Shown piece after piece: positions 40,708 through 58,300 of a stretch of DNA of 64,000 nucleotides. Below the pieces are notes generated by a model, which saw only the letters and a list, made by a program, of their open reading frames with translations, searched no databases and was not told the DNA's origin. The stretch covers positions 62,001 to 126,000 of the forward strand of contig CBFFRP010000065.1 of the NCBI GenBank assembly GCA_965644295.1, read 5' to 3'. Position 1 is the first letter of the stretch. Each line of letters opens with the position of its first letter. Source of the DNA: Paraphysomonas bandaiensis. Lineage: Eukaryota > Protista > Chrysophyceae. The position numbers were made by a program, and so were the translations under genes.

Positions 40708-42563
40708 ATGCATATGGTTATAAGTGGTGATATGGGGGAAGATCTCCTTGACGCATTGATATCTAATGACCAGGATTATGCTCGATGGATCATTGGACGT
40801 GACAAGCAATGTGTGAATTGGCAAGATCCCAACACGAAGATATCTATATTGCATACTCTTGTCTATAACAACAGTTATGATTCTATAAACCTTTTGTTGT
40901 CACATGGAGCTAATCCTAATTGCAAGAATAATGTACGTGTATGTTATCATCTCCTTATGTTTGTAAGAAACGTTATGTAGAACGAGGAAACCCCACTGCA
41001 TTGGGCTATTCGCATGAACAGTCTGGCATGTGCACAAATTCTAATCGAATTCGGCGCAGATGTAAATGCTCCTGATCACTCGGGGTCCACTGCTTTACAC
41101 ATTGCTGCGTTTTACGGGATTCCGGAGATTGTACCTCTGCTATTGTCACATAACTCTAGAACTGACTGCGTTGATATCGAAGGCAAGACTGCACTGACTA
41201 TTGCCATGGAGCAGAGTGATAATGACGCATCGTTGGCTTGTGGAGTAATTATTCGACGATTTGATGATATTGTTTCCAGAACTCATTCTCAGTTATCCCG
41301 TATGGCGCCGATTCCAGATATTGGATCTCTAAGTCTTTCCCAGCAGCCCCAGGGAATGCCAAGTATCCCTGTTCCATCAAAAGTGGATGGGCCAGAGGTA
41401 CAGGAGAAAAAACGCGGCAAAGGTTTGCACACTTCCCCCTTATTGCAAAAGAGCAGTAGCAGTAAGCCATTCATCGCCGGGAGTACACTGCGAGTACAGG
41501 AGTGGTCATCCGAACAGCTAGTTAAATCTTACTCATCACCTACCCTTCGGGAAAGTGCAAGTCCTAAAAAACTACAACTTATGCGCGATAGAACGACTTC
41601 GTTACCGAGGCCGGGGCGGCAGAGCGGCGGAAAGGAACAATCATCACATCAGTCAACCGTTCAGCTCTTTGCTAGCCGTGAAACTTCTCCTAGAAAAAAG
41701 GGTCGCCAACAAGAACCCCCTCGGGACGAGTATCACTGGGCCCCTTTTTTACCTAAAGCTGCAGCAGAGTTAGATGTTATTGTGTCCGTGGAGCATTGTA
41801 ATGGTTGCCACAACCACAACTGGTCGTTGTGGCACAAAGAGGAGTGCTACTGTAAATCAGCCAACAAGAGCCTTAGAGCAGTGCTAAGTGCGATTCGGCG
41901 AAAGTTTGGTGGTCTCCGTGTATTTGCATTTACAGTTACCAAGGCGAAACGCTTAGGGGCGTTGGAGGTAGTGATTTCAGTCAAAACTCCGGCAGAGGGT
42001 AATCAGTGGGAGTCAAAGACAGTGCACTCTAAGCTCGAGACAAAGAGGTGACGAAGTATTGTTGGGAAATATTCGCCTTTAACCTTTTTTATGAAGTTGG
42101 CCAAGGCGGACTTCTATGGTTTCCTCTGCATTAAATTTCATCCATTCGGTGTTGTGCAAGCATGCCACCGAATCCCTATTACAGCTACAAGAGCAAAAGC
42201 CCATGATATTGAAATGTGGGAGTGAGGACCGATTGGATGAGGACGTTCTTCGTTATAATCAATTCGGTATTTTTTAAATTTCGTGTCGTATGTGTTGTGA
42301 CGTATTTTACAGATACTATGTATTCTCATTGGCAGGATCGCTTAAAAAGCAATAACACTGCACCCCATGGTAACACCAGCGAGTTGTATAATGAACTTCT
42401 TACTGCCGATGGAAAGTTTCTTACGTCAATTCCTCCAGCCATTTCAGAATCGAGAGAAGATTTAGAAATAAGCGCACTTAAACATTTTCTTGTATTTGAT
42501 GGGAGGTTTCGTGATGATGAAATATCGGAAGAATTTACTAGTCAATGGATATCAGGAAAATAG
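40708..42563 (+). CDS. Ankyrin-repeat protein with C-terminal Rdx/SelW-like CxxC domain, multi-exon
   Basis: SILHTLV...LLSHGANPN, ETPLHWA...FGADVN, STALHIAA, KTALTIA. Then VSVEHCNGCHNH...RLGALEVVI...VHSKLETKR|WP. The start codon is uncertain. Confidence 0.8.
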
Positions 42564-43290: not shown

Positions 43291-44417
43291 ATTTATATTG
43301 ATTCTTACTATGGAAGAGGAACCGCTGGTGGAGGTCAAAGACCCAGCTAAAACCTACCTCATTGGTAACGTTAAGAGAATACTGTTGGAACAGACTTTGT
43401 TCATACGTTCCTGAAGAGAAGTAATTTTGTTGAATAGTTTCAATAACCTTCTTTGTGGGTTTACAGTTTTCTGTTCAGGCGGAAACTGCAGCAGATGTCC
43501 CCTCTCAGTTCCCTTGCATGGACCAAATTACCACAATCCCGTCAATTTCTTAACATTCAATTGTAACTTATCCCTTCAGCTGATAGAGCTTGGATCTACT
43601 AACTTTTCGCATAGCTGACAGACATCTGCTGCTCTGCCCACGCTACGGCGTCATCTTAGGTAGCTCTGCTCTTCAGTCTTAGGGGTTGTGGGATGAACAT
43701 ATTGTTCAATCAACCACTATGTGTGGAGAGGTTATCAATGACTTTTCCGTTCCTCCGCAACATCCTTATCATAATTTCCGCGAACCGCAGGTGCCGCTGT
43801 GGTATGGAAATCGGTTTACTCATCAAGGTGCTCATCATATAGAGCAGTACTCCAATGCCTTTACAACACTTCACCACATCCATTGTGCTATAGTTAGCCC
43901 CCAAGAGACTAGGTGATGCATGAAATATCGTGAACAATTCATGTCATGCTTCAGAGCGTTTCTGTCGATGCTCAATGTATCTTCTAGTCATAGATATCAA
44001 GATATCCATGTACAGATATAGGCATCATTGTACAGTTACAGATCCCACTGACACTGGCTGTATGAAGGTTTTCTACGGGCTAACTACGAAATCTATACGG
44101 CCGTCTGTAATCCGTATCTGCCCGTCGAAATTGCTGTAGTTGTATACAGTGTACATCATCTCGAGTGCTTATGTATGTATATGTATGTTATTATGGGTAC
44201 ACAAATTCAAAATATGATCCATTAAATTGACCCAATAGAAGCATATGCAAGTTGAATGACTTGAAATTTAACACTCTTGAGGGAACTTATGATCATCTTT
44301 TCCACTAGTGTAACGATTGATATTTAAATGGCTCCAGTATAGCGTCATATAGAGATCTACCTGGAAGACCACTGCACTGATCTGATAGAACACACTGGTC
44401 GATACTGGGAATATAAG

Positions 44418-47400
44418 ATGATCTCATACACACTTTTATTGATGAAAATATTGTTTTTTTATTGTTTTTTATGTACTGTTCAGTCTGAGTTTGTGACTAT
44501 AAGTAAGAGTTATATAGAGGTGATGCCTCATTGCTGCAGTGTATATAACTTATACTAACATATGGACATAGAATGAAAATGCCCTCTGTCTGGATGGTTC
44601 ACAGGCTTCCTACTACTTGAGACGTAACGTAAGTAGTTCTGGGTGGGTTGTATATGCCGAAGATGGCTTTATGAACTGCCTTGGGAACGATGACAATTGC
44701 AGGAAATCCATGATCCAATGGCCATATTTTTCATCATCTGATAATCATTACCACCCGCAAACTGTGGAGGCCACTGCAATATTCTCCGATGATCCAAGCA
44801 TCAGTCCATGGGCGGGCTACAACTTTTTATATCTGAACTTCTGTTCTCAGGATGGATGGCTTGGTAGGTCGGAATCTCTCGTCAATGGAGCTTATCTACG
44901 AGGGTCTACGATCTTTCAGGCCGCCCTCTCTGAGGTGCTCAATAGTACGAATCGGGATAACGCGGAGTTGGTTCTGATAGGGAGTGGTGCAGGTGCTCTG
45001 GGGATTTTCAACCACATGCGATGGATTGTCGACACTCTCGGATTCAGTGAGGGCCAGTTGAGCGTTGTTCTAGATAGCTATCTCTCCCCAATCACACAGA
45101 CCCAACCCTCAAAGGTAGGTACTGCTGAAATATTTTTTTATGTTTTCTCATATGATATAGAAATTAGTAGATATTCTACCCATTGTAGCGGAAGGTTACT
45201 CTCCTGCGTCTGAACTCTGGGTAGACGGGCAACCATGTGCACTTGTTTATGACTGTATGCAAAGCATGGGCTATATTCCGAGAGGAATCAAAACACTAAT
45301 CATTGCCTCCTCCTTTGACGCTGCTGTATTTGCGTTTCCTTCGTCCGCCTCTTCAGGTTTTTCATTTTGTCGTTTCCATATCGTGTCTTGTGTGACTTCA
45401 GTCCGCAGAAATGACCATTGAGGACAAGGATCTGGAAGGGATATCAAAACTAATTTCTCAGTATGTGACCTACTCAGGTTCTGTGGTCCAGTCTGCCACC
45501 AGTCTCTACTATGACAGAGTCTCCTCGAATATCACAGTGTTTGTCGCAGGCTGTTTGCACCATGTGTATATCACTCCTATAGACCCTTTTCGCCGAGATT
45601 TGAGATATAAAGAAGTTTCTGCGGGGCTAGGACGTTGGAAACGCTCTACAAATTTGGACAGGTTTGCTCGAGTTAACAGTGTGATAGGACCTTTTAGGTG
45701 GTTCAGAGTAAATTTTCCTGGTTCAAGCGTAGAATACGGGGCGCGTGTGAGTCCTGTTCAGTACCCCACAGGTGCCACTCTTGGGGAGATGGTAAGCATA
45801 TGGGCGCGCAGCAACACACCAGATATAGCTGGTGACCTCTGCGGCGACACCCCACAGTGTGGTGCGTTCTGTAACAATGAAGAACTCACTGCGGCCCGGG
45901 TTCCATTGAGAGAACAACTCTTTCGACGGCTGGGGTTTGCCTCGATTTCTGTTTTGGCAATTGTTCTAGTCGTGATATGTGTGCTACTCTTAACTGATGG
46001 AGTGCACCGACGTGTTGGAGAAGAAGGACTTAGTGATGACAAAGACGACCTCGTGAATACTTTTGTGGCTCAGCGGAGGGCTAAGCGGCTGCTGGAGGAG
46101 AACGATGATGATGGGACAGGAGAAATGGTCCCATCTCCTGGTGTGCAGCGTAGCAGAGGTAGTGGGATTGCTATGGCTCGCGCTGCAATGAATATCACTT
46201 TCGGGAAGAAGAGATTTGCGAGACAACAGATGACTTCAGGCTCGAGTGAGAACCAAAAGTATGCCATTTGTTGGAGTAGTAGATGAGTGTTTCTAATGCG
46301 GGTTGTGCTCAGATTGATGAACCTATTGCATCAGATGGATGGACACAGCGCGCTTTGCTGGAGTGGTCTCAAGTACCACATATCGGCGGAGGAGTCTGCA
46401 ACCATTAGCGGGAGTTGGGGGCGGCTGCGATACGGGCGTGTAACTGGTATACTGGTCGGTATTAAGCTCAAGTTACTTCATGTGTTTGATAACTTGTCTA
46501 TGCAGGGACCCTCTGGCTGTGGTGAACTGGCTTATTGTCGGTTATTGCTCGTATAACCTTGGATGCAGGGAAATCAACGCTGTTGAAGATCTTATCAGGA
46601 CGATCCAGATCGGGTGTACTCTCAGGTCCAGCATGTATATATCTCTTTTACCGTATTCTAATGAGTAGCACAGCATCCTATATAATCAAGCACTTGCTTC
46701 TTTGTAGTTTCGAACTTGTCTCAGAGACGGTATCCGATGTGCCCCCTTATTACCACTATCATTTGACGCTTTATGTGAAAAGGGTATGGGCATCTCCCTT
46801 GTGCATAGAGACGGAGAGGGCACACTTGTTCCGCATATGACAACTGAAGACAATCTGTTCTACAGAGCCTCTTTATTTGCATCTTTGCGGAGTTCTGCAG
46901 AAACTATTCACAAACATGTTGATGCTATTCTGGAAAGATGTGGACTTTTCTCTCGCAAGTACACCCAGGTGATGATTACATGAGTTCATTATGTTGGCTC
47001 TGCACAACTGATGCGCTTGATTAGGTTTCAAAGCTGACAGACGGGCAACGAATCCGGCTTCTAATTGGTAATAGTATGGAGTTCTAAAATATATTGGTAA
47101 TATATACATGACAGGAATGGAGTTAATTGCTAACGACTCAATTTTGTTTTTGGTAAACTACACTTGATGGTATACTTTATGTTCTTATGACAATGATAAC
47201 TGTAGGACGACCCTACAAGAGGATTGGATGCATCATCATCACTGGAAGGTACACACCACCGTGACATGTTCATAGACTTGAGTAGATTATCTAATCGTGT
47301 ACAGTGATGACAGTGGTGCAGAACGAAGCGATGATACAGGGAAAGTGCATCGTGGTGGCCATGCATCAACCTAGAAACGAGTTATTTGAACTTCTTGATG

Positions 47401-49738
47401 ACCTGATTCTCATTAAGGTGGTATATATGGTGGTGTTTTGTTTGCTAATTTAACATGCAGGGTGGAAAAACCATATACTGTGGAAGTGCCTTTGATTTCA
47501 AATCCTACATATTTGATCAACTCGAGGAATCTGTTTACGATTCAACAAGCGATCGCATTGTTGGTCATCTTGAGAAACATCGCGATCTCTTTATTCCTAG
47601 TCAGTGGGACGAAGATTGCGTCACAACCAAAATGGTGAAGCTTGACGTTGTTTCGAAAATAGTGCGTTCATCACAGCTGGTGGTGCCTAGAGCTGAGGAG
47701 AGGTACCTCGGAAAACACGAGAAGAGTATTCAATTTGAAAGGGTCTCTGACATGTTTGTCCAGTTTTGCAATGCTATTACGGATAGCGATGGAGAGCAGG
47801 AGTTCATTCCTCCCGATATTGTTTGTGAATTATATGCGGATGGAATACAGAACGTTTCCGCAGCCGATATTGTAAATCAAGTCAATTTCGTGCTGGATCG
47901 GCACACGAGTGGCGAGGAAGAATACATACCTGTGGGAGTGAATGTAGAACAGAGAAATATATCCTACTTACTACGACGGTGGCTGATGAAGATCACCATC
48001 ATTATTCGACGACTATGGCTTGTGCACGACTCTCTCTTCTATATGGGCTTGTTCGGCTTGGCAGTTCTCGTATACCCGCTGATGGCTCTCCTTCTGATGG
48101 ACGGTGTAGGTGTCAACGACCTATTTCTTGGACTTTGTTTCATTACATTCTTTCCATTTTTTGTTCTTACTCTGGTTGTTCCATCTTACATGGCCGACAA
48201 CTACCGGCTTATTCGCAATGAGTTAGACAGCGGAGTGTATGGAGCGCTTGCTGTACAACTGGCGTTTCTTGGGTTTTACACGTTCATATCTATCTGTGTT
48301 GCTCTGGTTATATATTTTTCGATATTTGTGATTCATGAACACACGAACTTCTGGGAGGTTTATAGGGGGGTTATTATCCTGTGAGTAGCTCCTTCCGAAG
48401 TAGTTATAGTGTCTTATTTACAACTGTAGGAATATGGACATGTGCTTCCATGCGAGCGTGATATACTTATCCACTTTGGTCTTTGATGGTGACTCGAGAA
48501 CGGTGAGCGACTATTTCTGTTTTGAATTTATGTCACTTCCTTTTCAGGTTTTTATTGCCATTTCTGCACTTCTAACTGTACAAACGTTATTGAGTGGCAT
48601 ATTTTTTAGAATTCACAAGTTTCCTGGCGCTGTGAAAGCTATAATGCAAATCAATCCTATTTTTAACACTGCAGCTTCATTCCAACACTTTTATATAGGA
48701 TCATGTGGTGTGGACTATGGGGATGAAAAGTTCTGTAGAAACGCACTTATGTTGACTTTCGGATATGAGCCTTACAGTGAACCCTCCTATGGACTATTTG
48801 TGCTCATTGTTTGGACGGTACTGGTGAATATGCTATCCATATTTGTAGGTGTGTTGCGTAGTTGGATGGAACCGGGAGTGAAAGTTCAGAGGCGTAGTAT
48901 GGATGGATCTGGCAGCCGATATCTATCTCATTCGTTGGAGCACCCTGGGTTCTCCCTAGATAATGGAGCACGAAACGATGATGGAAACCCTCTCTCGTCA
49001 GAGGTTGGAGCCGAAGAACAACAGCACAATATTGACAGTTCAGAGCTCGATCTTGGGTTGGAGTCAGTAGAAAAGGAAGATGTTGACTCAAACCACGGGC
49101 AGGAGAAAGAGGCAACGGAACGTACACGTGAAGTTGAAATGGAGGACGACAGGAAAGAAGAACTAGTGGACGGCGATAGCCAAGAAGCTGATATTCAACA
49201 CCACAGTGATATGAAAAACAGTAATTTAGACATGGAGATTGAGATGATTAGCGGAGAATTAGAGTCAAAACAAAGCAAGGAAAGCAGCACTGCTGGGAGT
49301 ATATTAGATGATATGTCGCAAGTCAGCAGTCGTGATTGTCCATCTCCCAAGACGCGCCCACCGTTACGTAATGCTGTGATGACGCAGGAGTCCATGGCAG
49401 TTATCGATGTAATAGACAGCGCCCTAGATGACGAAAACGCTGTTGTGACCACTAACAATCTGTTTACGTGCACACAGACCGTTCAATCAAGCGGGCACGA
49501 GTTTGCAGAATTATGTATTGTAATATCATTTCATCAACAAGTGAACTCAAAGAAAGATATCATACTAGGTTTGTCAGACTCGCAATTAAGTATGAGTGTT
49601 GCTCTTGTGGATTCGCCAGATGAGGAGGAAACGATTTCCTTATTCCGGATGATTGATGGTGAAACTATTAACTCTAGGTTTAGCAAGTCGAATTCCACTA
49701 TTACTGTTGTGGCAGCAATTATTGATTTTGATTGGTAG
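44418..49738 (+). CDS. Pectinacetylesterase/Notum-like ectodomain fused to an ABCG-type half transporter, multi-exon
   Basis: Signal peptide; ALCLDGSQASYYLR, YNFLYLNFCSQDGWLG, YLRGSTIF, LIGSGAGALG, GCLHH; one TM; NBD GPSGCGKST, LTDGQ, ILFLDDPTRGLD, MHQPR, GGKTIYCG; ABC2-type TMD (IRNELDSGVY, LLSGIFF, INPIF); acidic tail. Exon junctions around 46625-46780 are uncertain. Confidence 0.82.
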
Positions 49739-50347
49739 TATTCGCTGTATATTGTATGGTAGTTACACAGTACATATTTAATAATAAGTACTCCCCAAAA
49801 AGTGAATTCTCACTTGTCTGCCACAGATAAAGTAGAATGTAGTATTTGTACATTTGTACCATTTTGAACTGATGAAAAGTAATATGCTTACATTTACCCC
49901 ATTACGACTCACTACAGGAGACAGGAGGGTACTTCGCCTTTATAGACATTACCACAAATGAAGATAGAGTTTCTATTTTCTATGCAATAGATTTCCACTA
50001 AAATGGTAGCACATGAGATGTTGCTGATGTAGTGATGACAAACTAAACAAGAGTATATGATGAAGAATAAATAATAAATACATGTATCAAACGTAGATTT
50101 GTAACAGCAGTAATGTTGACATGTTGACTTATATTGAAGTGCGAAGGGTATCGGTGATACATAGATGTGCACATCTGAAGTAATAACAACTAAAAGGAGT
50201 TCAAAACAAAAAGAATATATACTGTGACATCCTCATTATTAATGCGTCATTACACCATGTCGAAAACTTATTTCTATCTCATCTCAAATTAAGAAACGAC
50301 ACCGTTATGGAGCGAGTATGCTACGTAGGTGACTGCTTTTAGTCAAC

Positions 50348-51964
50348 TTAATACTCATCGTCTTGTGTGGTATCGGCAGAAATGGTCATATCCAGCTGCT
50401 CTCCGGTGATGCGCTCGTAGAGACTGAGCACATCATTTGCAGCAGTCTCAAAATGACTAAAAGAAAGTAAGGCATACAGCTGTGCTATTGCTTGAGATAG
50501 GCTTACCTGGTGGCATCATAGGACTTAGAGATGTAGCACTTGTCTCGGGTGCCATCAGCCACAGGGGTAAGAAGAGTCGAGACACTGTCAAACCTTTCCA
50601 TGATGTTCCCGAGTAGGGCAATACCGGGGTTGAGTTCAGCCATGGGGTTGCTAGTCTCCACAGTTGTAGAAACGATCGCAATGTACATACCACGGGAGGC
50701 AACCATATGGGAGCTCGAGACAACGGCGACATAGATGTCGTTGCGGCGGCGGACCTCACGTGCTGGAATAATGATTTGTGCTGATTCTGAATTGTCTGTC
50801 CCAGGCACAGGGTGGTTCAGCAAACAGATGGAACGCACAACCTGTCCGGTAGCCTCACATTTGGTCGGGGGAAAGTAGGAAGGTTCCCCAATGATCTGGG
50901 GTGCCTTGGCAACCTCATTACCAGTTTTAATACCCCAAGCCTTGCCCTGTTCATCGAATAGAACCTCATCCACACCCTGTAAGTATGCAGGTCAGAAGGA
51001 ACCGGTGAATATACATTCTATGCAGGGTTACCTTGTTGAGCATGAATGTGCCTCCATGAATGGCGCAGAGGCGAGAAAACCCTTCCGGCAATCCTCCCAA
51101 CCCGTAGATGGGGTAGATGTATGGGGACTTTCCGTATCGCTCTAGCGAGTAAACGTATAGCTGGATGCATTCACATGCGTATGAAGCACGCTTGTTGAGG
51201 TAGTCATCGTCCGTCTGTAAAGCCATTGCGTGGCCAGTGAAGGACTGAGTATTGGCATCAAGACCAAAGTCTTCGAAAAGTTCCCTCATGGTCATTTGAT
51301 CCAAATTCTTACCGTTGCGCCAGGTAGAAGGGTTTGATTTGTCATAGGCCTGAAGAAAGAGCAGGAAGTTGCGAAACTTGCGCTTTTCAAAGAACCCCAT
51401 AAGTGATGAGTTAAGGGCCTCCTGGCCGGTGGCAGGAACTTTCTGGGGCTTGTTGTCCTTGAGGACGTAGCTACCATCAACACTCTTGAATTCCAGGTAG
51501 CGGGTCACCTACAGATAGGTTAAGTCAATTCTCATCACTGCAAAACACAAAAGACTGACCTTGGCATGGAGAAGGATTTTGACAAGATCACCACATGCCA
51601 TGATAAATTTCGGAACCAAGTCAACATTCCAGTCACGAGAATGCCCTAAGCTCTGTGGAGGTTCTTCTCCGCCGCGGAACTTCTGGTAGAGATTAGATAA
51701 ACTCAAAGAGGCGGTGTCCGATCCATAATAGTTGTTCTTATCAACATGCAACACACGTTTGCCTTTCACAGACAACAATCCACTGATAATACACTCCGTA
51801 AGTCCAGTTCCCATAATAATGGCATCATATTCTCCATCTAATTAATAGACGTTAGATATCATGATACATACATATATATATACATGTACTAGCATATTAC
51901 CCGCTAGTGGCTCACATCCCTCTGGAAGCCAATCAAAATTAGCACTTGATTTTTCTTCTGACAT
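50348..51964 (-). CDS. GDI1: Rab GDP-dissociation inhibitor, multi-exon
   Basis: EYDAIIMGTGLTECIISGLLSVKGKRVLHVDKNNYYG, RDWNVDLVPKFIMA, YGKSPYIYPIYGLGGLPEGFSRLCAIHGGTFMLNK, SKSYDAT|SHFE. Confidence 0.97.
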
Positions 51965-52485: not shown

Positions 52486-54153
52486 ATGATTAGACGGTGG
52501 GGATTCACGGGATTGGCTGTAATAGCGCTGCTTGCTCTGAGCAGAGGAGGTGCAGTAACACTGATGTACATTAAACTTTATACAAACTAACCCACCTGTA
52601 TTAATATAGATGACTTTGAGGACTATGCTGGAGCAGGGGGTGATATGGACTATGGGTGAGAGCATTATTATGTGTTGTTGCTGCTTCTTATGTGACTCTG
52701 GGGATGTGTAGTTACGGAGAGGGAGGATATGGAGGGGACCCCTATGGTGGATATGGCGGTGGGGGATACGGTGGCGGGTATGGCATGGACCCATACGGTG
52801 GAGGGTATGGAGGTGATCCTTACGGTGGTTATGGTGGTGGCCCTCCTCCTATCCCAATGAAAGAGTTCACTTCTATTGAGGAAATCAAAGAATTCGTTGC
52901 CGAAGATGACAAGGAACCTGCAATAGTAGGATATTTCGACTTGGAGACCCACAGTGCTGATAAAGAGGCTTTTGATGAGGCTCATCAAATGGGTCAGACC
53001 AAGTATAGGTTTGGATTCACCAGCAGCAAGGAGGTGCTGGAGGCAATGAAGTACGATGGGTGCTCAGTTGTTGTGTACCGCCCGGTTAGTTAGTTGCACA
53101 CACACCTTTCCCGATTTTATTTTCCCTTCAGAGTAAATTTGTAAGTGAGAAGTACGAAAAGCCGAAGAGCCGTTACCCCTCAAAGAGTATTAAAAGTAGT
53201 AGCGCTCTAATGAAGTTTATTGAAGACAAATCGTTGCCTTTGGTGGGTCTGAAGACCGCCGCTGGAGCCTCTCGTTATGAAGACCAGGGCCTACCCGAAG
53301 TGACCCTTTTCGTGGAGGTTGATCTTGACAGAAACTTCAAGCAATTCCAGTACTACGCGAACCGCCTTCGTAAGGTGCTTTACTTTATTATATTCCTTAC
53401 GTACCACTCATTGAATTTCTTATGTCTAGGTGGCCAAGGACTACACCTCTAAAGTAGTGTTTAACATTGGCGATAAGGAGTAAGTCAGTTCCATGAACTA
53501 TGTAGTTTGTGCTTATCATTAACTATAGGGAGCAGTCATACCTTGCCAGCAGCAAGTATGGGATTACTCTTCCGGACCGTAAAGACGTTGGGTTGGGTCT
53601 CCGCAGTGGTGGCAATTTCTACAAAATGGAAACTTCCTTCTCTATGGACAATGTGCGTGCCTTCGTAGAGGAGTTCCTTGCGGGAGGACTTGCAGGGAAG
53701 GAACACCAGCAGGCGGATGACCTAGATGCCTACGGAGAGGAAGAGGAGGACGGACCAAGTGCCGTTGTGACACTCGATAATTCCAACTTTGACGAGGTAG
53801 TGACTGAAAGCGGGAACGATGTGATGGTCGAATTCTATGCGCCCTGGTGTGGTCACTGCAAGGCACTCAAGCCCACTTACGCTAGCGTCGCCAACAGACT
53901 CAGCGATGTGGAGACTGTCACCGTTGCAGCTATGGATGCGTCAACCCATACTCCACCCAGCTCTTTCGACGTTCAGGTAGTGCTCCACAATCGTTTGTTT
54001 ATTCTCTCTAAATGTGTTTGTACACCATAGGGTTTCCCAACGCTATATTTCGTTCCTGGAGATAAGAGCAAATCTCCCATGCCTTACGAAGGACCAAGGG
54101 ATGCGGATGCTATCGTAGATTTCATCAAGAAACATGCAACCACTAAGTTTTAA
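52486..54153 (+). CDS. Protein disulfide-isomerase-like (PDIA3/4-type b-b'-a') with N-terminal Gly/Tyr-rich region
   Basis: Signal peptide MIRRWGFTGLAVIALLALSRG; GY repeats; b/b' motifs (KYRFGFT, KFVSEKYE, VDLDRNFKQFQYYANRLRKVAKDY); EFYAPWCGHCKALKP; FDVQ|GFPTLYF; ends KHATTKF*. Confidence 0.9.
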
Positions 54154-55372: not shown

Positions 55373-58300
55373 ATGGAGAAAGGAGACACTCGCAGACCTC
55401 TGCTATCGGTTAGCAGTGTTATTATATTAATTACTATATGAGTGTGACTATGAATGTATAGGAGTATGTTGCACATGATCAGACCAATGAAAGACATCGA
55501 TTATACTCACAGAATGCTCCAAAAATAATGCTTGAGACAATCTCTGCTCGGGCGAATGGAATATTCGCATTGACTTATATCGTGTTTGTATTGGCACTCA
55601 TGTTCGATATCCACACAACTGTTAAGGGGTTCAATGGACGAAATGCTGAGCTTTCGTCTGAAAGTTGTAAATCTCAAAACATTGTTGTGGGGACGACAGA
55701 AGGCAATTACGGTAAGTCAATTCCTGGCAATTGCAATGCACAGTGTTGGGTGTTAGAGCATTGCTGTTACTCTTTTAAATACAGATGTTTAATGATACCC
55801 TTGCGCAGGATGTACTGATATACTGAACAGTTCGCAATCCTCCAAAACGTTGACCTGGATAGGACATGCCAAAGGATTTACGAACGTTATCTCTGTTGCA
55901 GTAAAAGCGAAGTTATCTAATACATCAACTATATTCTACAATGGCAGCTATATAGACGATGATTCCGTCATATCAGATATTACAATCAAATACGACCTGT
56001 ACTTGTATTGCTGCTACAGCAATTCTAATTGCGGCAATGTTTCCATTCCTGGGCAGGATGACGTCAATGCCAACGGAGACTGGAAGAGCGTGCTATCCCT
56101 CAACAATGAGAAAATTAATATAGATAAGTATGTGTCGTTAGAAGATGGCGACTCATCCACAATGACACTGCTACCCAACACATTTCAGAACCAAGAGTCT
56201 CTTCCGACAGAAGGGAAAGTTAAATCCTACTTGGTGTACATAGTTTTCGATCAAGAGTATTCGTCATACGAATCTTGGGATCAAGTGACGTACACATTTC
56301 GAGATATTTCTCGTCCTGATGTTTCCAATACTGATATGGCCCTCCCTGTTGTGATTCTACTGACCATTATTGCATTAGGCATGTATGTATATGCTATATT
56401 CGGCATCACTCATGGGAAAATTCGTCAAGCTCTTCCAGAACAAAAGTGGTGTATTGTGTATTTGCTTGCTGTTATTCTCTTTCAGAATCCAATCTATGCT
56501 GTAATAGTAGTGTTCATCGACAGCCCATCACCTACCGCGGTGTATGCCTGTTATGTCCTCGATGCACTTGCACAGTCTATGCTTATCACTGTATGGCTTC
56601 TATTTGCAGATGGCCTACGGAGACAGACAGACTATATATGGTTTTACGCTCCTAAAGTAGCTACAGGAGTTTGTATATTTACATGTAACTTGGTTGTCTT
56701 AACTCTTCAATTTCCGTCTATGAATCCGCATGATACTAGGAGCCCAGTGGAAGCAGTTTCTAACTGGTCCGACGGCACAAAATTGGTGTTCATTATTTTT
56801 TCCATATCACTCATTACCATATTATGGTTTTGGACATTTTGGTGGTTTTATATGTTATGGTACACTGGAAAGACTTTGCAGCAGCTGCCCTACATGACAA
56901 CACGTTATCTACAACTATCTTTTCGTTTTTTCTCTTTACAAGCAACACTGGTGACGCTATACTACTTTTTGCAAAATATATTGATCGTCTTTTACATTTT
57001 GCAACGGAGTGATTGGAAGCACGAAACTCTAGAGAACATAACAGATAATATCAATGTAAGACGTTGGATATGTAACTGCGATGTATAGTTGTGTAGTTCA
57101 TTTGTACCTCTATGGTGTGAATATTGTGATATAATGAACTGTGGAGTTTTGTAAACCTGCTTTTGCGTCTAACGTCTAATGTTTTCAGACGTTATTCCGG
57201 CAGCAAAGTTTATCATTTGGAAAAGTAATTTTTCTGACCACTTATGGTCTCATTTTGGCCTTTTTCTTTCTGCCAGCATCATCAGCCAAAGTAGATAACG
57301 CCATGGTTTCCCTTCAAGTGTCATATGTGGTATCTGAAGATGAAATGAAATCCGTTCGCCGTAAGCGGAAAACGGCCATTCGTCGCTTGGTGGCGTTGCG
57401 GCAACTTGTGGATGCCAAGTTAGATATATTTTGCGTTGATTTGGCACTGGAACTGCATGCTCTTTCGAATGAGGTATATCAAACAATAGCATATTGTATG
57501 TGACTTTTTTGTTATTCCGTTGAATTGAAAGCATATTTACGTCTAGGCATTTGTGAAATTTGAGCTAACCCTTGTATGTATGAAGGCGTACAATGATGGC
57601 GGTGGACTCATCACTTTATCTGGCTATGGCCCGTTAAACCTTGAGCTATGTGGCTATACTCTGATCAACCAGGCCTATGACAGTGAACACGAGGCAGTAT
57701 GCTACATCGTCAGGCATAAAACGATTAATAGAGTAGTTGTCATATTCAGGTATGATTCACTGTCGATATTACAATCAGCAACTTGTACTTGTGTGTCAGT
57801 AGTGTGCACATTTTGTGACTTGATGTATTCCAGAGGAAGTGCAAGTCGGCAACACTGGACAGACAATTTAAAGTTTTCTCAACGACCAATAAATTTAGTT
57901 GAAATGCCACTAAAGACTCTTGATTTAGTGGATGGTCTACAGATTCCAATGCAAAATAATACAGGTACAATATATCAGTGCTGTAGTATAAGTGGTATGT
58001 AGTTTTATGCATTACATATAGGTATTGGACCATCCATATTTTGTGTATATTTTGCGTTATAGATGCAGCTAAAGTTATTGTATATTCAGTGACATATAAT
58101 CAAGGGCACGGGTTTAATTTATTCGGTGGGTATGACTCTGACAGCGATTCTGATGAGGATGGCTGTGAATTAGTAGACACCGGGTATGCTGAAGAGGAAC
58201 AAGGGTAACTCTGAACTAATTTTAGTATCCTTTGTTACGTATGTGTAGGTACAATGCTCTAAGGAGTCGCACTGAGTCAACCACATCATACGGTGATAGT

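Follow-up and report, generated by a model that had tools for sequence, protein, structure and literature searches.

A gene at positions 44418-49738 of a 64,000-nucleotide stretch of the Paraphysomonas bandaiensis genome (contig CBFFRP010000065.1; the whole stretch is called the window here) encodes what its sequence indicates to be a type-I-anchored ectodomain of the Notum/pectin acetylesterase (PAE) kind fused to a half-transporter of the G subfamily of ATP-binding cassette proteins (ABCG). Catalytic residues are missing from both halves, and we conclude that this protein is a conserved, doubly degenerate variant, new within a PAE-ABCG family that is widespread and unstudied. In our preferred reading, to which we assign a probability of roughly 60%, the protein would form an ABCG dimer that binds ATP but hydrolyses it slowly or not at all, and would carry outside the cell a pseudo-esterase able to bind a ligand; the descriptive core, comprising the structure of the gene, its expression, the state of each motif, conservation and the family setting, is surer.

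This is a real, expressed Paraphysomonas gene, with the following layout.

44418-49738, forward strand: whole coding region, 16 exons, 1,522 residues (spliced contigs, open frame, GT-AG ends, MMETSP open reading frame P0001)
44418-44519, 44572-45114, 45161-45356, 45409-46258 and 46313-46454, forward strand: exons 1-5
46506-46521, 46569-46625, 46674-46729, 46783-46968 and 47025-47067, forward strand: exons 6-10
47115-47152, 47206-47248, 47305-47417, 47461-48380, 48430-48502 and 48548-49738, forward strand: exons 11-16
46506-46521, forward strand: micro-exon of 16 nucleotides encoding GPSGC of the Walker A motif (letters between the joints in runs X1 and X2; exon 6 of the paralog described below is also 16 nucleotides)

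Joined, the 16 exons give 4,569 nucleotides and 1,522 residues with a single terminal stop and none internally, and all 15 introns (43-56 nucleotides each) have GT-AG ends. Public sequencing runs containing the locus were compared against positions 44300-49900. Run X1 holds a single 4,808-nucleotide contig across 44300-49796 with the 15 introns spliced out, run X2 (filed under another organism label) has 14 of the X1 joints spread over two contigs, and the polyA marine metatranscriptome X5 has six of them, between 46966 and 48547; the DNA run X15 carries the same stretch unspliced. Although X1 bears the automatic label 'probably DNA', we interpret its spliced form as RNA, because the genome copies all contain the introns, the transcriptome reading frame P0001 matches, and X5 is a polyA RNA library. 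P0001 (MMETSP1103 Paraphysomonas transcriptome, 1,442 residues) equals residues 81-1522 with the one substitution T1139M. Within the skipped segment 46455-46568 the transcripts contain 14 extra letters, which were resolved as the micro-exon 46506-46521. The earlier note on this DNA had placed all the parts on one strand, joined by plausible GT-AG introns, and the single spliced contig with one open frame bears this out; the two separate transcripts that the note had named as a possible refutation do not appear.

Several minor differences accompany these data. At position 48585 the window has C and every compared run has T, including the near-identical DNA run X15, which changes Thr1139 to Met as in P0001 and is either an assembly difference or an allele. 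X5 contigs over 48138-49342 show five differing positions and, at depth 6.6, a one-nucleotide insertion after 48156 that would shift the frame within the transmembrane domain; the source of these differences is either a closely related strain in the environment or a fault in assembly. Gene callers miss the Walker A micro-exon, and the truncated Walker A of the Tribonema protein P0111 is probably due to a missed micro-exon.

The encoded protein is divided as follows.

44418-44519, forward strand: exon 1, signal peptide (hydrophobic residues 1-23) and start of the ectodomain (hydropathy; same exon/intron position in the paralog)
44572-45600, forward strand: PAE/Notum-like alpha/beta-hydrolase ectodomain, residues 35 to ~345 (Pfam PAE, Notum match in the PDB, motif alignments)
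45601-45929, forward strand: Cys-rich juxtamembrane stalk (GPFRWF ... LCGDTPQCGAFCNNEE), residues ~346-452 (invariant columns of alignment A1; tblastn to L016-L019 and L029)
45930-45995, forward strand: single transmembrane helix TM0, residues 455-476 (hydropathy maximum 3.2)
Residues 477-575: charged linker
46313-47475, forward strand: ABCG-type nucleotide-binding domain (NBD), exons 5-14, residues 576-800 (Pfam ABC_tran, PDB matches, comparison with canonical fusions)
Residues ~801-960: low-confidence linker
47956-48874, forward strand: ABCG-type transmembrane domain (TMD) with six helices and a Cys-containing TM5-TM6 loop, residues 961-1235 (hydropathy, AlphaFold2 model)
48875-49429, forward strand: acidic, fast-evolving cytosolic tail, residues 1236-1420 (hydropathy, comparison with the paralog)
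49430-49738, forward strand: conserved C-terminal domain of ~100 residues, residues 1421-1522, and stop codon

The PAE domain passes the Pfam threshold for PF03283 (42.3 bits, cut-off 26.6), and the best PDB match of exon 2 is Notum (E 8e-15). ABC_tran scores 61.4 bits (cut-off 25), and ABC2_membrane reaches 17.2 bits, under its cut-off of 26.9. Among PDB sequences the NBD is closest to ABCG1 (2e-28), followed by Cdr1, Pdr5, ABCG25, ABCG16, ABCG2, ABCG8 and ABCG5, with ABCA and importer NBDs ranking lower. An AlphaFold2 model of residues 580-1250 has confidence values (pLDDT) of 80-94 in the NBD and ~60-90 in the TMD, and its 50 best matches in the PDB are all ABCG proteins, matched over the full length of the model (ABCG25, ABCG16, ABCG2, G5/G8, ABCG1), with E down to 1e-20 and TM-scores by target of 0.61-0.75. 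The protein thus has the ABCG characters of an NBD placed N-terminal to the TMD in one polypeptide, an NBD closest to ABCGs and, by the AlphaFold2 match, a six-helix transmembrane fold of the ABC2/type-V kind. Given TM0, the esterase-like domain is predicted to lie outside and the NBD in the cytosol, together with the tail and the C-terminal domain, a self-consistent topology. The stalk is conserved throughout the subclade defined below (alignment A1 and tblastn to L016-L019 and L029), and the tail has 44 Asp or Glu against 17 Lys or Arg within 180 residues. The C-terminal domain (LFTCTQTV...ITVVAAIIDF, 49430-49735) is predicted to be mainly beta-strand; Pfam gave no match and the Atlas no usable match to a known family, BLAST did not detect it in other PAE-ABCG proteins, and its AlphaFold2 model (pLDDT 49) is too poor for use. 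Signal peptide, PAE/Notum-like domain, single transmembrane helix, NBD, TMD and acidic tail had each been listed in the earlier note and were all found, the conserved C-terminal domain being an addition.

In the ectodomain, the motif GSGAG places Gly173 (codon 44986-44988) in the column of the nucleophile Ser of human Notum (GSSAG in PDB chains) and of the PAE family, a loss that had been noted earlier and that the alignment to Notum upholds. The other two members of the triad are kept and align with their conserved columns: Asp268 (SSFDAA; codon 45317-45319) and His332 (GCLHH; codon 45561-45563). In the PAE/Notum family the triad sits in GCSxG, NxayDxxQ and HCQ motifs (PMC5465549). The oxyanion motif reads EDGFM (residues 64-68, 44659-44673), as had been described, and only part of its deviation is specific to this lineage: 'ED' instead of 'EG' is typical of the whole subclade, including Ser-retaining members (EDGG), whereas the second oxyanion-loop Gly is absent only in the four Gly-nucleophile sequences (EDGF, EDGY, EDGP). 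Loss of the nucleophile occurs elsewhere as well. About 12 of ~137 PAE homologs (P0001-P0150) are without the nucleophile Ser (e.g., P0009 SGAGG, P0024 KGGGA, P0056 TGAGG and P0139 TDAGG), so a dead PAE/Notum-like domain is a recurrent outcome; two of these homologs, P0056 and P0139, are PAE-ABC fusions too, known without their NBDs.

The NBD departs from the canonical ABCG ATPase set at the Q-loop, the signature and the catalytic Glu, and retains Walker A, the Walker B Asp and the H-switch. Walker A is intact (GPSGCGKST, split by the micro-exon between 46506-46521 and 46569-46579), as are the D-loop (GLDASS) and the H-switch (MHQP, 47361-47372). The Q-loop reads LVHRD (46798-46812), with Arg663 at the canonical Gln position; the signature is LTDGQ (47034-47048) instead of LSGGQ; and Walker B is ILFL (47141-47152) followed across an exon boundary by DD (47206-47211), the catalytic Glu now being Asp745. 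Each of these NBD motifs, Walker A, LVHRD, LTDGQ, ILFLDD and MHQP, had been reported and is there, at the stated coordinates where these were given, and the broader claim that both halves have lost catalytic residues with their frames open holds for the nucleophile and three ATPase features within the 1,522-residue frame. In an ABC sandwich dimer, one NBD supplies Walker A, Walker B, the Q-loop and the H-switch to an ATP site and the other NBD supplies the signature. The present subunit is deviant in both sets of parts; therefore no dimer that contains it would have a canonical site. This weakens the proposal, also made in the earlier note, of a regulatory partner in an ABCG heterodimer, as the degenerate Walker B and Q-loop on the one hand and the signature on the other would spoil both composite sites.

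Degenerate sites are familiar from asymmetric ABC proteins. In TAP (TAP1), MRP1 (NBD1), CFTR (NBD1), Pdr5 (NBS1) and ABCG5/G8 a degenerate site is paired with a canonical one, and in the ABCG5/G8 type of asymmetry one composite ATP site stays canonical. The replaced Walker B Glu and deviant signature are shared with these sites, but here both contributions are degenerate, and a homodimer or a dimer with the paralog would be without a canonical site. Compared with ABCG half-transporters in general (ABCG1, ABCG2, AtABCG25, ABCG5/G8), the order of NBD before TMD is the same, the NBD is closest to those of ABCG1, Cdr1 and ABCG25, and the predicted fold is alike; in contrast, this protein adds the N-terminal ectodomain and TM0, a linker of ~150 residues and a tail of ~290 residues, and has signature, catalytic Glu and Q-loop all degenerate in one subunit. 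General reviews describe a missing Walker B catalytic glutamate as the hallmark of degenerate, non-hydrolysing ABC sites (PMC7544095; PMC7756269), and a replaced Glu combined with a deviant signature is the recognised hallmark of sites that bind ATP and do not hydrolyse it (PMC7544095, PMC7756269, 10.1101/2021.02.09.430491).

The genome holds one paralog (C577:31797-37074, equal to L013:1298-6575), with a 16-exon model and an intact frame of 1,509 residues. Its exon lengths equal those of the window gene for exons 2-3 and 5-15, including the micro-exon, and of its 15 introns at least 14 sit in the same places; the automatic model had mis-spliced exon 15, and the fifteenth position matches once that exon is corrected by hand. 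Identity is 65% overall (ectodomain 72%, NBD 81%, TMD 71%, acidic tail 28%, C-terminal domain 66%). GSGAG, the triad Asp and His, LTDGQ, ILFLDD and MHQP are common to both proteins; the oxyanion motif of the paralog is EDGY and its Q-loop LVQRE. Between the two genes, nonsynonymous divergence (dN) per segment is 0.05-0.24 and synonymous divergence (dS) 1.6-4.1 or saturated, and the LWL85 method over 1,270 codons gives dN 0.218, dS 1.69 and a ratio omega of 0.13. Omega lies at ~0.02-0.14 in every folded domain (at most ~0.1 in the TMD, ~0.14 in the C-terminal domain). Such low dN against saturated dS is not the mark of decay; the sequences indicate that both degenerate domains are conserved since the duplication. 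The earlier note had asked whether homologs conserve the substitutions with dN/dS below 1, and the paralog, with GSGAG, LTDGQ and LDD under this range of omega, answers in the affirmative.

These data also bear on the idea of a decaying or non-functional locus, or of an artefact joining two genes, which would account for the several catalytic residues lost in both domains. It is hardly credible in view of the single spliced contig with its uninterrupted frame of 1,522 residues, the presence of the gene in culture transcriptomes and polyA marine metatranscriptomes, an intact paralog with matching intron positions and omega far below 1, and the same domain order in at least 20 other proteins. 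We therefore rejected both the pseudogene and the two-gene artefact: the frame is open, the transcripts are spliced and omega is ~0.13 or less, so that the non-expressed, decaying locus once raised as a refutation does not describe this gene.

Searches of public data place the gene within a larger family. An HMMER search with exon 2 followed by Pfam scans found proteins with PAE, then ABC_tran and, when complete, ABC2_membrane among animals in corals and sponges, among algae in a diatom, a xanthophyte and a green alga, and also in numerous environmental contigs; further fusions came from a word search seeded with the sponge protein, while a word-index search with P0001 returned generic ABC proteins only and no PAE fusions. 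Sponge examples are Oscarella lobularis XP_065837240.1 (P0252), Ephydatia muelleri (P0273) and Geodia barretti (P0277), and algal examples are Tribonema minus KAG5177704.1, Seminavis robusta CAB9525697.1 and Cymbomonas tetramitiformis KAK3260720.1. The coral Oculina patagonica has three fusion genes (ACROYT_G036176/77/81; P0258, P0259, P0263) on one 24-Mb contig. Coral and sponge fusions are annotated as 'hypothetical protein' and once, in Geodia barretti, as 'ABC transporter G family member 8'. The architecture, which the earlier note had not known from any other protein, is thus already present in public databases. It was not described in the literature searched (pectinacetylesterase with ABCG, PF03283, stramenopile ABC inventories), and no function is described for PAE-ABCG fusion proteins in the papers searched; the family is apparently widespread, present in databases and undescribed.

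The window gene belongs to this family by architecture and by its PAE domain, which lies inside the fusion clade: the order of signal peptide, PAE/Notum-like ectodomain, one transmembrane helix, NBD and ABC2-type TMD is shared, and a maximum-likelihood tree of the exon-2 (PAE) region unites every included fusion in one clade (support 95/91). All 14 fusions with a readable NBD are canonical, with an xSAG nucleophile, a Q-loop Gln, [LI]SGG and a Walker B Asp-Glu, and they have the H-switch His except in one truncated protein without that stretch. By their motifs, the other members look competent in both domains. Against this background the window gene has Gly for Ser, Arg for the Q-loop Gln, LTDGQ for [LI]SGG and DD for DE, and the paralog differs from the fusions in the same way at the nucleophile, the signature and Walker B. 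An ABCG with a Notum-like outer domain points to a transport step that is linked to taking off an acyl group outside the cell. No ABC NBD was found within ~8 kb of the other PAE loci of this genome (C11, C232, C146, C318, C424, C426, C432, C296), and no canonical PAE-ABCG gene was found in the genome, the search being a lower bound.

The gene falls in a subclade of 10 sequences (support 98/94), six of which keep GxSAG and EDGG. The four with a Gly nucleophile (this gene, the paralog, L014 and L015) cluster in the best tree, where their support is weak (79/54), and all four have lost the second Gly of EDGG. L029 (JACCDR010843177.1), a close relative of the Ser type that came, with L028, from a second metagenome scan (alignment A2) after a first scan with the exon-4 alignment A1 had found nothing, combines GTSAG with a canonical NBD (VRQ, LSGGQ, LDEPT, IHQPR). 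The contigs of the Ser-type fragments P0004, P0006, P0008 and P0010 (L016-L019) end short of the NBD. The distant Gly-type relative L014 (GSGVG) keeps the Q-loop Gln and Asp-Glu and has instead the signature LTMLEQ and an H-switch His changed to Arg. Both activities thus seem, from these motifs, to have been lost in the same lineage, and the loss of different catalytic residues on each branch while the domain persists is as expected if selection for hydrolysis ended in a common ancestor. Esterase and ATPase residues that vanish together in one lineage under strong purifying selection amount to a natural double-loss experiment, which argues for a functional link between esterase and ATPase activity in the canonical family and for a second, non-catalytic use of the scaffold. 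A bolder version holds that the canonical family couples extracellular deacylation to ATP-driven export, such that losing one activity makes the other dispensable, and that the Paraphysomonas scaffold is the first ABCG without a canonical ATP site, a membrane receptor or regulator that binds ATP and a ligand and detects an acylated molecule with its dead Notum-like pocket; we regard this as a doubtful proposition.

The history that we propose would run as follows. In the lineage of the gene and its paralog, Gly173 would have replaced the nucleophile Ser of the esterase and the second Gly of the oxyanion loop would have gone, and the NBD would have lost its catalytic Glu (now Asp745), LSGGQ (now LTDGQ) and the Q-loop Gln, with Walker A, the Walker B Asp, the D-loop and the H-switch kept. 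The protein would still dimerise through its ABCG core and still bind ATP, and hydrolysis would be slow or nil because its own Walker B and Q-loop, and its signature, degrade both composite sites of any dimer. The ectodomain would bind an acyl-ester ligand without cleaving it, making the whole a non-catalytic binding or regulatory module rather than an esterase-coupled pump. From the pattern of lost and kept residues we infer that both activities are gone, that ATP is bound but not turned over, and that the ectodomain binds a ligand.

The main rival is a working, slow ATP-driven exporter, acting alone or as a heterodimer with the paralog or another ABCG half, whose dead esterase serves as an extracellular acceptor or dock for a lipid or acylated substrate. 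The intact Walker A, Walker B Asp, D-loop and H-switch agree with it, as do a TMD under purifying selection (71% identity to the paralog, omega at most ~0.1), the many other ABCG-like NBDs in the genome and the conservative nature of two substitutions (Glu to Asp, Ser to Thr). We nevertheless consider it rather unlikely, since no dimer site would be fully canonical, with the subunit's own Walker B and Q-loop and the signature it lends all deviant, and since different catalytic residues (signature, H-switch) are gone in the related L014 lineage, a pattern to be expected once selection no longer maintains hydrolysis.

Several observations weigh against a dimer with little or no hydrolysis and a purely binding ectodomain. 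The Walker B change (Glu to Asp) and one signature change (Ser to Thr) are conservative; residual ATPase activity is conceivable, and in the paralog a Gln that directly precedes the canonical Q-loop position might take over. Asp268, His332 and Ser172, which adjoins the lost nucleophile, are retained, and a non-canonical esterase arrangement remains formally conceivable. The link between esterase and NBD losses reflects one evolutionary transition, possibly two, and has the standing of an observation without statistical weight; moreover, tblastn across unverified introns supplied the reading of the L014 NBD.

In a putative cell-surface receptor or sensor, a function suggested in the earlier note, ligand binding by the pseudo-esterase would be passed via the ABCG core to the tail and C-terminal domain, which would make sense of two lost catalytic centres in conserved folds, a conserved cytosolic C-terminal domain behind a variable acidic linker, and a conserved Cys-rich stalk. 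Pfam and Atlas recognised no signalling domain, however, the C-terminal model is unusable, and the evidence does not separate sensing from passive binding or scaffolding; no ABCG is known to us to work as a receptor, and we hold this function to be quite improbable. A parallel to the ectodomain is found in neuroligins and other cholinesterase-like adhesion molecules, single-pass proteins in which an alpha/beta-hydrolase ectodomain has lost its catalytic Ser and been reused for binding, by analogy only, as these belong to a different hydrolase family and have no ABC core linked. Yeast Adp1 is an ABCG with an N-terminal ectodomain, which carries EGF-like repeats and not an esterase fold. With Notum and plant pectin acetylesterases (CE13, PF03283) the domain shares the CLDGS start, the CSxD motif and the triad Asp and His (E 8e-15; PMC5465549), but has Gly for Ser, an oxyanion Gly-Gly cut to one Gly and, unlike the secreted enzymes, a membrane anchor as part of a transporter. 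A dimer without a canonical ATP site would be an unusual state for an ABC exporter, and a useful one in which to ask what the ABCG fold can achieve by binding ATP that it does not hydrolyse. The organism is a marine grazer that lives freely, and to our eyes nothing of medical or applied interest is at issue.

The genes around the fusion gene are not related to it.

41014-42051, forward strand: ankyrin-repeat gene, upstream
50503-51508, reverse strand: Rab GDP-dissociation inhibitor (Rab GDI)
52656-54030, forward strand: thioredoxin/protein disulfide isomerase-like gene
55850-57088: open reading frame with a Wntless-like (WLS-like) transmembrane domain (Pfam 42.5 bits), ~6 kb downstream

The ankyrin-repeat, Rab GDI and thioredoxin-like genes have no evident link to the fusion gene. 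Wnt is a target of both Notum and Wntless in animals; because stramenopiles are not, to our knowledge, known to have Wnt, the WLS-like reading frame near a Notum-like gene is probably a coincidence.

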